A stretch of DNA of 54,734 nt from Octopus bimaculoides (Eukaryota). The position numbers and the translations under genes are program-made. Location: positions 93,118,854 to 93,173,587 of the forward strand of contig NC_068986.1 in assembly GCF_001194135.2 (NCBI RefSeq). The letters are read 5' to 3'. Positions 26,478-53,045 of the stretch are shown one piece after another; within the stretch, counting starts at the first letter, position 1; every line of letters starts with the position of its first letter. The notes under the pieces are model-generated. The model was not told where the DNA came from and made no database searches. It worked only from the letters and a program-made list of their open reading frames with translations.

Positions 26478-27535
26478 TGTGTATTTCTGCATTCACAGTT
26501 ATACATACATGTGTGTGTGTGTGTGTGTGTGTGTATCACACATCTACACATCTATATGGTTACATACACTGATATATTTACAAATACTGACAGACACACA
26601 TATATATATATGTGAATACATACACGTGCACACACACACACACACACACACACATAAACATCATGCAAAATATTTATTCATACATATTCTGTACATATAC
26701 ACACACGGGTACATATATCTATGCATTCACGTAGACATAGGTAAATGCTCACATCCCAGACATACAAACTCATATTTATGCACTTACATACATACATACA
26801 TACATACATAATATATACATACATACATACCTACATACATACATACCTACCTACCTACATACATACATACATACATACATACATACATACATACATACAC
26901 ACATACATGTACTTATGTGTATATTCATACACAAGCGCTCATACATATTCTCATAATGTACTTGGAACCCCTCACATCGGGAGACGGCTACTCTTGGCAC
27001 ACTTCACCTTATCATTACACCTTTCATTTTTACTTATTGTGCACTTTAAATTGTTTATGTATGGTGATGGCAGTGGTGATGGTAGAGGTATTTTTTAGGA
27101 AAGTGATGGGGTGGGCAAGGGTAACAGTCGTTTGTTACATTCCATCTTCTTTATCAAACGCAGATAAGTTCTTTAAGGTGTGGTGCTGTTTGGCACAGAT
27201 AATGTATCACTTCTTCTTTGCCTATTTCCTCCTTTTTTTTTTTCTCTACTGCTGCTGCTACTACAACTATGGCAACAACAACATCACCACCAACAACAAC
27301 AACACCAACAACAATACCACCACTAACAACCACTACTACTATTTTTACATTACCATTGCCACTACGATGGTTACAGTGTCTAGTTTGGTACTTGATATTT
27401 TTTGATTACATCATACACGTATACAACAGGTTTCATATGAACACACAGACACACACACACATGAATATATGTATGGTCTGTGGTTATGTGTGGATAAAAT
27501 GACGATGGATATTTGTCCTCATCTTGTTTGTTGTT

Positions 27536-27581
27536 AACACAACATTTCGGCTGATATACCCTCCAGCCTTCATCAGGTGTC
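27536..27581 (-). ncRNA. Minimal type-I hammerhead ribozyme, catalytic core intact
   Basis: GACAC-CTGATGA-A-GGCTG gagggtatat CAGCC-GAA-ATGT-T-GTGTT. Stem I is GACAC/GTGTT and stem II is 5 bp. Helix III is the palindrome ACGT mutated to ATGT. There is an extra A between A9 and G10.1. Confidence 0.8.
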
Positions 27582-27911
27582 TTGGGGAAATTTTGAACCT
27601 GGGTTCTCATTCCTAAGGTATTTTTCGATGTTGTTATTATTATTATTATTATTATTATCATTATTATTATCATTATTATTATCATTATTATTTTTCAGGC
27701 CACTGCCTGGAATTGAACTAGGAATCTTGGGGTTAGTAGCCCGTGCTCTTAACCACTACGCCATGGGCATATGGCGTAGTGGTTAAGAGCGCGGGCTACT
27801 AACCCCAAGATTCCGAGTTTGATTCCAAGGAGTGACCTGAACAATAATAATAATAATAATAACATCAAAAAATACCTGAGGAAGGAGAAGCCACGTGCGA
27901 AATTCCCCCAG

Positions 27912-27957
27912 GACACCCAATGAAGGCTGGAGGGTATATCAGTCGAAACGTTGTGTT
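27912..27957 (+). ncRNA. Minimal type-I hammerhead ribozyme, core mutated (CTGATGA>CCAATGA)
   Basis: GACAC-CCAATGA-A-GGCTG gagggtatat CAGTC-GAA-ACGT-T-GTGTT, with the palindromic AACGTT intact. Confidence 0.7.
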
Positions 27958-28068
27958 AACAACAAGCAAGATGAGGACAAATATCCGTCAAATGTAAATA
28001 ATGTATGTAATTCCACATCTCTAAAATACAGAACTGAATTAAAAATTACTTTTCACTATGCACTCACC

Positions 28069-28221
28069 CACACCACTTCCACCATCACCACTTCCACCAT
28101 CACCACTTCCACCCACACCACTTCCACCCACACCACTTCCACCCACACCACTTCCACCCACACCACTTCCACCATCACCACTTCCACCATCACCACTTCC
28201 ACCATCACCACTTCTACCATC
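28069..28221. repeat. 15-bp minisatellite ACCACTTCCACC(ATC/CAC), ~10 copies, running into an N-gap
   Basis: Read directly. It produces the TTSTI/TTSTH ORFs. Confidence 0.95.
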
Positions 28222-28494
28222 NNNNNNNNNNNNNNNNNNNNNNNNNNNNNNNNNNNNNNNNNNNNNNNNNNNNNNNNNNNNNNNNNNNNNNNNNNNNNNN
28301 NNNNNNNNNNNNNNNNNNNNNNNNNNNNNNNNNNNNNNNNNNNNNNNNNNNNNNNNNNNNNNNNNNNNNNNNNNNNNNNNNNNNNNNNNNNNNNNNNNNN
28401 NNNNNNNNNNNNNNNNNNNNNNNNNNNNNNNNNNNNNNNNNNNNNNNNNNNNNNNNNNNNNNNNNNNNNNNNNNNNNNNNNNNNNNNNNNNNNN

Positions 28495-32282: not shown

Positions 32283-33450
<1,168 letters not shown>

Positions 33451-33486
33451 ATTATTATTATCATTATTATTATTATTATTATTATT

Positions 33487-34015
33487 GAGTGAAAGAGCAG
33501 GTCATGCCATCAAAGTGATACTGGGGTAAAATATACGAAGCCCATTATACCCATCATGCCTACCCGTCTGATAAGGGTACACCATGCACATGCATCACAA
33601 TCATATGCGCGCGACATGGTGATCTCATATCAAGATAAACAGCTCATGACCTCGCAGGTGGGGCCCAGTTAGAATTTTCTTCAGGTCGAGTAGCCCATCC
33701 CGCTCAAAAGGTCTCTGAATAAGATTTGTTTAAGGATGTTGAGCAAAACACCCATGTTTCCAAAGGTGAATTATTCAAACCCCAAAGAATTCCTCTCAAC
33801 ACATGGCTCCCCCACTACTTCTGCTCATGATCAGAGATGCACATATCGTCAGCTGCCAAGAGACATGCTCAACTGGTTAAGGTCAAACAACTGACAAGCA
33901 AATCTGTGGTATTGAGCAGAATATATGCTGTAGGCCATCTTTTTATACCAAGACAAAACAATGTACATGATAGCACTTCCAATCGATTCAGATCAGAAGC
34001 CATGACAGCCACTGC

Positions 34016-34016: not shown

Positions 34017-34094
<78 letters not shown>

Positions 34095-35319
34095 GCTGTT
34101 GTTGTTATTATTATTAATATTTATTTTTGTTTATATTTTAGGTAAGTACCAATATATTGAGACTGAACTTTAACCTTGTTTATGGTAAGATGCATATATT
34201 TATATCTTTCAACATTGTGTTTATTTGACACAACAATCTGTAAAATATTTGTGTACACTCATGTGGTTTCATAGTGAACAAAGATGAAAGAATTAATGGT
34301 GGTGCTTACATGACAAATATAGTCCTCTTGTCTATTGAAATACTTCCAAGCTTTAATTGAAATAAGATATAAAAGTTGAGAAGTGGATTTTAGTATAATG
34401 GCTCTCAGTTGTGTTGCTATTTGATATAGGGCCACACTGCTTGGTCCTACATGTAGGATTGTGCACTGAAGTTTTCAAACAGGTGGCATTGCTACCTAGA
34501 TGTCAATTGAATGACATTTAGTGACATTTAGGTTGAAACACACATAATGCCCTCACATATATATATCCACACATGCACATATATACACATATAGAAATTG
34601 AGGGATTGGAGCAGGTAAAATGCACACTACATATGTTTCTTATCTTACTGAACTGCTAGATGTAATTGTCATGCAATGAGTGTGTTCAAGTCTCCAATGT
34701 ATTGGAGTTGATTTGGAAATTCTGAGTGACAATGTAACCATAATTTCATGAAGGTCATGGGGGGGGGGGGTTGTTAGTGTGTGGTGTGTAATGTATGTGT
34801 GGGAGTACAATGTGTGTGAAGGGGTATATGTTGGGGGTAGTGGGAGAGAGTCTATTTGGTGGGTGTCCTTTTTGGGGCATATGTGTGTGTACAGGGGTGC
34901 ATTGGTGTATGCTCTGGTCAAACTCTTTGCCAAGCTTGAGGGTATTGGTGGAAGGTCGAGGTCAGGGACCTGTGGTTGTAGTCATGATAGGGCTCGCAGG
35001 TATCATAGAATGTACTTCGTTTCATGTGGGCAAAAATTAAACACTTCACTCTAGCTGTTCAGGTAAATATCCGGGTGCTAGGTACCCTTTAAAATCACTC
35101 TCTTCTTCACTAGGCATCCTGCCTCTGCTTCAGGTGTGGGCCTACCTACTAAAATCTTTTTTAGACTTTGTTTGGTGGTTTGGGCTGGTCAAAGTAAAGT
35201 CCTTTCGTCTCATCCCTCTGATCAATTTCACTATTTTTCTCCAGCAGTGCAACTTTTCCCTGACTTAGGGACTCTTAGATGGCTCGCAAATATATAATAT
35301 ATATATACATGTAAAGACA

Positions 35320-49962: not shown

Positions 49963-50334
49963 TTTTTTACTTGTTTCAGTCATTTGACTGTGGCCATGCT
50001 GGAACACCACCTTTAGTCGAGCAAATCAACTCCAGGACTTATTCTGTGTAAGCCTAGTACTTATTCTATCGGTCTCTTTTGCCGATCCGCTAAGTTATGG
50101 GGACCAGCATCGGTTGTCAAGCGATGTTGGGGGGACAAACACAAACACACATATATATATATATATGTATATACATACATACATACAACGGGCTTCTTTC
50201 AGTTTTCGTCTACCAAATCCACTCACAAGGCTTTGGTCGGCCCGAGGCCATAGTAGAAGACACTTGCCCAAAGTGCCACGCAGTGGGACTGAACCCAGAA
50301 CCATGTGGTTCGTAAGCAAGCTACTTACCACACA
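49963..50334 (-). mobile_element. SINE family A
   Basis: Colinear with 44139-44540. Confidence 0.9.
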
Positions 50335-50479: not shown

Positions 50480-50658
50480 GTGCTTCATACAGATGTGGGC
50501 TGTCAAGCTGGACTAATTTTGGGAACTTGATGTAGAATTGTGTGGTACAGTTTTTAAATTTTTGTTCATATTCTTCTTTATCATATCTTTTACTCCAATT
50601 ATTATTTGTATTATTTTCAATTTCATACCCCACATTCTTCTTGTATCAATTTCAAAAT
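50480..50658 (-). pseudogene. Decayed R4/Dong-type RLE C-terminal fragment
   Basis: DFEIDTRRMWGMKLKIIQIIIGVKDMIKKNMNKNLKTVP parallels DLRIEITKMW...VIPIVIGAL at 31475-31912. Confidence 0.6.
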
Positions 50659-51028
50659 CCTGCCTGACTCCCGTGCTGACCCTGAATTCCTCCGACAATC
50701 TCCCAGCATCGACCTGTGGGAAAGGGCCAACCAGGAGCCTGTACATGTTCAGATTAGACGAAGGAAATGGAGATGGATCGGACACCCACTGCGGAAAGAA
50801 CCCTCAAATGTGACACGACAAGCACTTGACTGGAACCCGCAGGGCAAAAGGAAGCGAGGACGCCCGAAGCAGACATGGAAGCAGAGCATTTTGGACGAGC
50901 TCAGGACCAGCGGCCTGACATGGGAAGCAGCCAAGAAACACACCAATGACCGTAAAAAGTGGAAAATAACTGCTGAGGCCCTATGCTCCCCAAGGGGCAA
51001 GAAGGATTAAGAAGAGAAGAAGAAGAAA
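50659..51028 (+). mobile_element. 5'-truncated RTE LINE with an inverted 5' segment
   Basis: The plus strand from ~50697 reads (I)S.IDLWERANQEPVHVQIRRRKWRWIGHPLRKEPSNVTRQALDWNPQGKRKRGRPKQTW...WKITAEALCSPRGKKD* followed by (GAA)n. The minus strand 50660-50700 reads RLSEEFRVSTGVRQ, the RT GVRQG motif region. Confidence 0.9.
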
Positions 51029-52466: not shown

Positions 52467-52882
52467 CTTATTTCATGAATGGCTATATTGGTGATGTGTG
52501 TATGTGTGTGCGTGTGTGCTTGCATGCATCCACACACGCATGCATGCACACGTGTGCATTTGTTGATGTAAGGAGTTTTCCCATATTTGTTCTTTAGTTC
52601 ATAGCCATCATGAGCAAGACCACTCCAGAGCACCACCTTCAGAATTGCAGTTAGATAACATTTAAAAGTCTTAGAAGAAACTTTTGCACTGTTTCAGAAT
52701 TCTTTTGGGAAGCAAGATTTAGGACTGAGAACCTTTTAAATACCAAACTGTTGTTTCCCAAGTCTCTGATACGTAAGTTTGAAGAAAACAAAGTTGGGAT
52801 TTGGTTTCCTCCCTTCTTTCTTCATTTTTTTCTTCTTTTGTCTGTCAAAGTTTGGAACAGGGTATTTAAGAATCATCCAAAC

Positions 52883-53045
52883 TGGCATGGCCTTGTGGTT
52901 AAGAAGCTTGTTTTGCAACCACCTGGATTTGGGTTCAGTCTCACTGCATGACACTTTGGGCAAGTGTCTTCTACAATAGCCCTGAGCTGACTAATGTCTT
53001 GTTAGTGAATTTGGTAGATGGAAACTGTGTGGAAGACCATCTTAT
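52883..53045 (+). mobile_element. SINE family A head/core (diverged)
   Basis: GGCATGGCCTTGTGGTTAAG...GGGTTCAGTCTC...TTTGGGCAAGTGTCTTCTAC. Confidence 0.75.

Follow-up and report, generated by a model that had tools for sequence, protein, structure and literature searches.

A SINE-like octopus element with a Penelope-type hammerhead, inserted as a head-to-head palindrome that probably reflects Penelope-type integration

The stretch of the Octopus bimaculoides genome analysed here (contig NC_068986.1, forward strand, positions 93,118,854 to 93,173,587; 54,734 nucleotides, hereafter the window) contains, at positions 27500-28011, two copies of one ~230-nt unit arranged head to head, with arms that are ~86-89% identical. 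The unit combines a head related to transfer RNA (tRNA), which carries the A and B boxes of an RNA polymerase III (Pol III) promoter, with a tail that contains a minimal hammerhead ribozyme of the type found in Penelope-like elements (PLEs). Relatives at other loci identify it as a member of a dispersed family that resembles short interspersed nuclear elements (SINEs), and an inverted partner recurs among them. We consider it probable that the locus represents one old SINE-like insertion, and that its palindrome stems from PLE-type integration and not from a fixed dimeric unit of transposition.

A repeat finder resolves the pair into inner arms (27673-27764 and 27771-27862, each 92 nt, 90% complementary, with 6 nt between them) and outer arms (27504-27653 and 27840-27989, each 150 nt, 89% complementary). 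This confirms the inverted repeat described in the initial annotation, which had two copies of the unit diverging from a 6-nt spacer; the supposed spacer, GGGCAT (27765-27770), however, belongs to the right copy, as its first 6 nt by family consensus. When the arms are aligned in the same sense and the microsatellite is excluded, 22 of ~193 positions differ, a divergence of ~11%, with 9 of the 22 differences at CpG sites; the (TAA)n runs differ in length by 42 nt. The right copy extends ~22 nt beyond ...ATATCCGTC and so reaches 28011, and its similarity to a copy encoded in an O. bimaculoides protein (P0001, see below) extends to 28035. The ends of the pair are sharp and coincide with the ends of the family unit. 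A search for inverted homology in the flanks of the pair found none, and there are no further copies of head or tail elsewhere in the 54.7-kb window.

In both arms, TGGCGTAGTGG is followed, after 32 nt, by GTT(C/T)(A/G)ATTCC, a spacing typical of tRNAs. The pattern of an A box, 25-50 nt and a B box has two matches in the window, which are the two heads, while shuffled sequences average 0.1; the box search thereby bears out the earlier reading of a tRNA-like head in each unit. At the promoter boxes, the family consensus is GTTCGATTCC. Where the right-arm B box has TTTGA, that of the left arm has TTCAA; the family alignment confirms the two as decay products of an ancestral TTCGA. The (TAA)n run that had been taken for a module of the unit is present in both arms, but the family consensus at this site is a short AAT-rich linker, AATAATAA, so that (TAA)n in the window is a local expansion. 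The stretch GTAGTGGTTAAGAGC(A/G)CGG (27772-27795 and 27741-27763) is presumably near-identical to the 5' head of MIR/CORE-type SINEs, which we regard as a lead only. PMC4824008 and PMC4758252 cite a CORE-SINE of octopus, which goes by the name OR1 in some papers and OR2 in others.

The hammerhead of the left arm reads GACAC-CUGAUGA-A-GGCUGG(AGGGUAUA)UCAGCC-GAAA-UG-UU/GUGUU, where the slash marks the predicted cleavage site and the loop AGGGUAUA is 8 nt long. Its core elements, CUGAUGA and GAAA, stand in type-I order. Helix I has five pairs (GACAC/GUGUU), and helix II has six (GGCUGG/UCAGCC, five Watson-Crick and one G.U, with G10.1-C11.1) and is preceded by an unpaired A; the cleavage triplet is GUU (NUH), there is no helix III hairpin, and positions 15.2-16.2 are U.G. 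Minimal hammerheads have been described as having a helix I of 4-5 bp, a long helix II that exceeds the canonical 4 bp, a conserved G10.1-C11.1 pair, an unpaired nucleotide that separates position 9 from 10.1, and a helix III that is absent or reduced to palindromic positions 15.2-16.2, a palindrome that would let two copies pair (PMC4209133). The left-arm motif agrees with every one of these published sequence features, and self-cleavage is predicted. The helix III palindrome is ACGU in the right arm and in the family consensus, and AUGU in the left arm through a CpG-to-TpG change.

A descriptor of the minimal hammerhead drawn from the features in PMC4209133, but composed after the sequence had been seen, has a single match in the window, the left-arm motif, and none in 400 dinucleotide-preserving shuffles; a looser version matches in 4 of the 400. 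The initial annotation had placed a hammerhead in each tail. This is correct for the left arm, where the ribozyme motif is complete, but in the right arm the core reads CCAAUGA instead of CUGAUGA, and the right-arm ribozyme should therefore be inactive. Searches with the Rfam hammerhead models gave no hit at gathering thresholds in the whole window and none at E <= 10 in 27400-28100. This silence is uninformative, because Rfam also misses the perfect minimal hammerheads of L016, a related locus from a second taxon that is described below. Rfam matches to microRNA precursors across the centre of the pair all fall under the gathering scores and are explained by the long hairpin.

An alignment of 13 copies of the hammerhead region gives the consensus GGACAC-CUGAUGA-A-GGCUGG...UCAGCC-GAAA-CG-UU-GUG, a canonical minimal hammerhead. 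Standard pairs fill 79% of the helix cells of this alignment, compared with 17-46% when the pairing partners are slid, and helix II shows double changes across copies, from U-A to C-G and from C-G to U-A. The full descriptor is satisfied by the left arm in the window and the units of L016 alone. We also considered that the CUG of the left-arm core might be an accident of CpG decay from a dead CCGAUGA, by analogy with the B boxes, where a TG of one arm stands opposite a CA; this was rejected, since the family consensus is CUGA.

To find relatives, the open sense frame of the tail was translated and compared with a set of 1.84 billion representative proteins. The search returned 31 matches that share the motif TP(D/E)EG(W/R)R.Y.PK.C.NNK.DED; in protein form, this motif represents the hammerhead together with its surroundings on the 3' side. 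They include two O. bimaculoides proteins, UniProt A0A0L8FV75 (P0001) and dystrobrevin beta isoform X1, XP_052825882.1 (P0006); many of the others are open reading frames (ORFs) on the Logan short-read contigs SRR11869384-94, and many come from ENA assemblies of the second taxon. The 14 contig records with these ORFs collapse to 8 distinct loci, seven of them cephalopod and the eighth L016. We call the SRR118693xx contigs cephalopod, or octopod, by inference: two of them carry a repeat that is abundant in this window. An antisense-frame protein search and exact look-ups of the window ORFs yielded no further copies, and 18-mer scans of viral and metagenome contigs gave chance matches only.

At least 10 cephalopod loci were found, 56-79% identical to one another, one of which (L015) carries a 5'-truncated copy. 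Alignments of heads and of tails across these copies define the same ~230-nt unit, which consists of a head beginning GGGCATATGGCGTAGTGG, then AATAATAA, a linker, the hammerhead and ~60 nt that end in AATGTAAATAATGTAAATAAT; its 3' end is (AATGTAAAT)2, a repeat that contains TGTAA and is preceded by a small hairpin. On this evidence, head, (TAA)n and tail are one element and not a chance juxtaposition. By its sequence, then, the unit belongs to a retroelement family of octopods that is dispersed, non-autonomous and SINE-like. This bears out the SINE-like nature that had been proposed from the tRNA-related head and the Penelope-type hammerhead tail.

One of the copies, outside the window, has become part of a predicted gene. 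In XP_052825882.1, the dystrobrevin beta isoform of O. bimaculoides named above (GCA_001194135.2), an element copy contributes the annotated start codon along with the first 32 residues (MPMGIWHSG followed by EGWRVYQPKCCVNNKQDEDKYPS). A predicted intron apparently spans the stretch between GTGGTTAAG of the head and ...GATGAAG of the hammerhead. Back-translation of MPMGIWHSG gives ATG CCN ATG GGN ATH TGG CAY ..., which is compatible with the palindrome centre in the window.

The direct copy has an inverted partner lying against its 5' end at four of the four cephalopod loci at which a 5' end is visible, and also at L016 in the second taxon (Table 1). The junctions vary among the loci, with inverted copies that stop at consensus position 7, 11, 12 or 184 and gaps that range from 0 to ~26 nt. 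At L015, the 265 nt of contig upstream of the 5'-truncated copy contain no inverted partner. The head-to-head layout noted in the window is thus a recurrent trait of the family, but it does not amount to a fixed dimer. Variable junctions and a copy without a partner fit the formation of a partner at each insertion, as published for PLEs (PMC8557442), and speak against the earlier suggestion that the inverted dimer is the unit of transposition.

The second taxon repeats this architecture at L016. The inverted copy there comprises a tRNA-like head, a body, a perfect minimal hammerhead and TTTTT, and it faces a tandem array in which every 129-nt unit has a perfect minimal hammerhead, with arms that are 95-98% identical. 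The element ends in AATGACAG and TTTTT, unlike the octopus family. On sequence grounds, L016 looks like a recently active retrozyme with a Pol III head.

Could the palindromic dimer, with its centre ...CTACGCCAT/GGGCATATGGCGTAG..., nevertheless propagate itself or be rebuilt deterministically by snap-back? At three loci, the inverted copy stops near the same site (position 7 in the window, 12 in L018 and 11 in L011), and the exonised copy in dystrobrevin beta X1 would allow a centre almost identical to that of the window. The centres of palindromes tend to suffer deletions, so that the junctions could have come to differ secondarily. However, the Pol III promoters face outward, so that neither can transcribe the whole dimer. 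The partner in L009 is limited to the last 46 nt of the unit and lies 26 nt away, L015 lacks a partner over the stretch given above, and the direct side of L016 is a 5'-truncated tandem array. Moreover, pairwise identities do not group the arms by side, with the proviso that the older loci are too decayed to inform and that a clear pairing is seen for the window arms alone. We therefore consider a self-propagating or deterministically rebuilt dimer quite unlikely. A stronger version, in which the family is obligately palindromic, its inverted dimer is rebuilt at each insertion by sequence-directed snap-back, and the two outward Pol III transcripts pair via the palindromic ACGU of helix III to form the dimeric hammerhead that minimal hammerheads require, seems to us very unlikely; if true, the palindrome would serve as the functional unit that activates the ribozyme, as opposed to being a by-product of integration.

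The pair could also have arisen from two independent insertions, the second at the 5' end of the first; variants of this idea are a local inverted duplication and an assembly fold-back. New PLE copies are said to land in or beside existing ones (PMC6765202), and the window, a draft scaffold with ~36% G+C, is interrupted by 16 runs of N. An assembly fold-back is ruled out, though, because the two arms show ~11% divergence and their microsatellites are unequal by 42 nt. A duplication or a double insertion is hard to reconcile with homology that ends at the element ends on both sides, with the recurrence of the layout in other contigs and assemblies, and with the fact that the window arms are each other's closest relatives (86% identity, against at most 79% to any other family copy). 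The layout is no one-off, and we regard this group of explanations as highly improbable.

Our preferred reading, a single insertion shaped by PLE-type integration, suggests the following model. The element would be transcribed by Pol III from its head, and a PLE would supply the reverse transcriptase and GIY-YIG endonuclease that copy its RNA into the genome. Integration would characteristically place a 5'-truncated copy, in inverted orientation, against the 5' end of the direct one, plausibly through priming on both strands of the cut, or through events at the RNA's 5' end, either a template jump or a snap-back. With an element so short, both copies would come out near full length and the insertion would become a palindrome. 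The hammerhead probably acts in dimer-dependent processing of the family's transcripts, as has been proposed for PLE hammerheads. Mobilisation by a PLE is a step that we infer from the type of ribozyme and the architecture of the insertion alone.

A long interspersed nuclear element (LINE) might have mobilised the family instead. In that case, a stringent partner of L2/CR1 type would recognise the stem-loop and the (AATGTAAAT)2 that follows, the hammerhead would be a captured "central domain", and double priming in the course of LINE-type target-primed reverse transcription would make the partners. The family's 3' end, a short tandem repeat with TGTAA after a small hairpin, suits such a partner, and we take it to resemble the tails of the L2 clade. 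In classical LINE twin priming, known from L1, the 5' segment of an RNA is inverted and becomes joined to the direct 3' segment of that RNA, which does not yield two near-complete copies; a partner at four of four loci would likewise be unusual for LINE-driven SINEs. CR1 and RTE LINEs are abundant in octopus (PMC13282606), and the window itself has an RTE-like reverse-transcriptase fragment (50558-51007), but the tail of the element is dissimilar to this fragment and to everything else in the window. The related element at L016, too, with its AATGACAG and TTTTT end and its adjoining retrozyme-like tandem array, does not point to a LINE. We consider a LINE partner rather unlikely.

Several observations weigh against PLE-type integration of a SINE-like element, or at least against parts of this reading. 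The 3' stem-loop and TGTAA-containing repeats are as suited to a stringent L2/CR1-type LINE as just described. Pfam searches of 95 window ORFs found no reverse-transcriptase or GIY-YIG domain, nor did the L016 ORFs (5.4 kb) contain one, and an autonomous element that shares the tail was not found in the window or at L016, with the cephalopod genomes lying outside the DNA-level search. No convincing target-site duplication flanks the pair: around 27500 and 28011, only the 7-mer ATGTATG recurs within ~30 nt on each side. The head is weakly tRNA-like, since the Rfam tRNA model scores the left arm at 16.5 bits (gathering score 29) and leaves the right arm unscored, and ARAGORN detects no tRNA in the window, the related loci or the family consensus. 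The hammerhead is fully intact in one of the 11 cephalopod copies examined, the left arm in the window, and covariation support for it is modest, as expected of neutrally decaying copies. Finally, the sample of four cephalopod loci and one second-taxon locus with a visible 5' end is small, and as three junctions and a fourth inferred from protein are similar, they may go back to a shared ancestral junction with later small indels.

On the assumption that the two arms started out identical, their divergence and the rate that follows from PMC13282606 put the insertion very roughly at 10-20 million years ago. In its present state, the right arm is without a ribozyme core and without the key C of the B box. 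The left arm retains a plausible promoter and an intact ribozyme motif, with TTTT directly after its end. Both copies are decayed, so that it is at most plausible, and for the left arm alone, that Pol III transcribes outward from this locus and that the ribozyme processes the transcript.

Table 1. Features of the inverted pair (window coordinates) and of head-to-head junctions at the window and related loci
Feature	Position or locus	Strand	Details
Left (inverted) copy	27500..27764	-	Consensus positions 7-208; without the first 6 nt and the last ~22 nt
Right (direct) copy	27765..28011	+	Consensus positions 1-230
TTTT run just past the 3' end of the left copy, read in its sense	27496..27499	-	Candidate Pol III terminator; direct reading
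Complete Penelope-type minimal hammerhead, left copy	27536..27581	-	Helix I GACAC/GUGUU; core CUGAUGA; predicted cleavage after U at 27541
Expanded (TAA)n microsatellite inside left copy	27631..27693	-	42 nt longer than that of the right copy
tRNA-related head, left copy	27694..27764	-	A box TGGCGTAGTGG 27753-27763; B box AGTTCAATTCC within 27709-27720, still fits GTTCRANNCC
tRNA-related head, right copy	27765..27841	+	Begins GGGCAT; A box 27772-27782; B box 27815-27826, TTCGA decayed to TTTGA
Short (TAA)n run, right copy	27842..27862	+	Sequence reading, arm alignment
Hammerhead remnant, right copy	27912..27957	+	Core CCAAUGA (U4C, G5A); helices and ACGU palindrome retained
3'-terminal short repeat AATGTAAATAATGTA..., family 3' end	27990..28011	+	Not in left copy
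Junction	Window		Inverted copy stops at consensus position 7; gap 0
Junction	L018		Inverted copy stops at position 12; 13-18 nt between arms, depending on method
Junction	L011		Inverted copy stops at position 11; centre CTACG-T-CGTAG; right head interrupted by ~330 nt
Junction	L009		Last 46 nt alone inverted (stops at position 184); 26 nt from direct copy starting GGGCATATGGCG
Junction	L016 (ENA ERZ21867824, contig ctg121048l), 2216-2882		Complete inverted copy facing 5'-truncated tandem array of 129-nt units

The window contains other repeats. Just downstream of the right copy, a 15-bp minisatellite (CACCACTTCCACCAT / CACCCACACCACTTC) occupies 28065-28221 and runs into an N gap (28222-28494); the repeat finder reports it as 10 overlapping 75-nt windows at 15-nt spacing, and related low-complexity tracts lie at 27062-27111 and 27260-27330. 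A different repeat is abundant, with copies at 1853-2164(-), 9171-9518(+), 40132-40332(+), 44442-44645(-), 50098-50334(-), 52770-52976(+) and elsewhere, and is recognised by the translated motifs ...SLLTNHMVPGSVPLRGTLGKCLLL... and ...FDCGHAGAPPLVEQIDPRTY...; many of its copies contain or adjoin (TA)n/(TG)n, and several stand beside assembly gaps. We take it to resemble the major octopus SINE. At 32380-32760, a long (TAA)n/(GAT-AAT)n/(CAA)n array adjoins another repeat, which ends ...GATTCTGTCAGCTTGTCACCTT on the minus strand and, on the plus strand, gives the impression of a tRNA-type head directly after (TTA)n. Runs of (TAA)n beside repeats occur also at 3968-4036, 33446-33489 and 34017-34131. 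The RTE-like fragment is an open frame on the plus strand without a Pfam match; its resemblance is to the C-terminal region of RTE-type LINE ORFs. A third repeat family, with the translated motif RLQSDLAEFLQLDALPNANHSESVVGAF, is found at 6292-6567(+), 7576-7758(-) and 46170-46520(+). Two of these three copies contain CTGAGGACTG(A/G)TGAAA, which fits a loose CTGANGA...GAAA pattern but fails the hammerhead descriptor.

What moves hammerhead-bearing SINE-like elements and animal retrozymes is still argued mainly from their co-occurrence with PLEs. In the octopus family, a Pol III-type head, a minimal hammerhead of Penelope type and the Penelope-type scar of an inverted copy at the 5' end come together within ~230 nt. 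This is compact structural evidence, albeit indirect, that SINE-like elements can be moved by PLE machinery. Its compactness also makes it a small test system for how PLE integration produces inverted copies, and the relatives in the second taxon, with their closely matching arms and perfect ribozymes, look recently active. Such palindromes could form long hairpins in read-through transcripts, which, by analogy with other inverted repeats, might be edited or silenced as double-stranded RNA. PMC8557442 describes difficulties that complex PLE insertions cause in the assembly of short reads, and palindromes of this kind may add to them.

A search of the literature, with Dfam, Repbase and SINEBase outside its scope, gave no description of this family of cephalopods, nor of any element of SINE size for which insertion as a palindrome is the regular form, and a search for the head sequence gave nothing. 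The architecture, of which the initial annotation knew no exact description, is nonetheless not without precedent, since Sm-alpha and Sj-alpha and opposite-strand pairs of minimal hammerheads have already been reported. According to PMC2770079 and PMC6765202, Sm-alpha and Sj-alpha of Schistosoma are Pol III-type SINE-like elements with a hammerhead, and tRNAscan-SE calls thousands of Sm-alpha copies as tRNA-Gln. They share with the octopus family the layout of a short non-autonomous retroposon in which a Pol III-type promoter is followed by a type-I hammerhead; they are dispersed and present in high copy number, and are now grouped with PLE-associated elements. The hammerhead of Sm-alpha is canonical in these accounts, with a helix III hairpin, and is recognised by Rfam, whereas that of the octopus family is minimal and without helix III. 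Sm-alpha is also described as typically tandem and belongs to another phylum, while the octopus copies are head to head; this comparison is one of descriptions, not of sequences.

The pairs of minimal hammerheads on opposite strands were reported in Schistosoma in 2014, 100-700 bp apart (Cervera & de la Pena, PMC4209133), and the two octopus motifs, 330 nt apart, fall within this range. With the minimal hammerheads in the pseudo-long terminal repeats (pseudo-LTRs) of PLEs (PMC4209133), the octopus motif has in common the G10.1-C11.1 pair, the long helix II and the lack of a helix III beyond palindromic positions 15.2-16.2. It differs in being part of a ~230-nt unit, behind a tRNA-related head, with no reverse-transcriptase or GIY-YIG ORF found nearby.

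Animal non-LTR retrozymes (Cervera & de la Pena 2020, PMC7229834) resemble the family in being non-autonomous, hammerhead-bearing, AT-rich and proposed to depend on PLEs, and a recent preprint argues that they are non-autonomous PLE derivatives (Li, Clavereau & Pollet 2026). The relative at L016, a tandem array of 129-nt units with perfect minimal hammerheads, extends this likeness. In contrast to retrozymes, the octopus unit has one hammerhead and a Pol III head and forms no tandem array, its window copies being inverted; a single copy cannot release a unit-length circular RNA.

As to the insertion itself, Craig et al. (2021, PMC8557442) describe PLE insertions in which the direct copy is joined, at its 5' end, by a 5'-truncated copy in inverted orientation. 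The octopus locus differs from them in that its element is ~230 nt long and non-coding, that both copies are near full length and form a ~500-bp palindrome, and that there is no partial tandem (pseudo-LTR). It shares with them the inverted copy at the 5' end of the direct copy, and an extra stretch at one end only.

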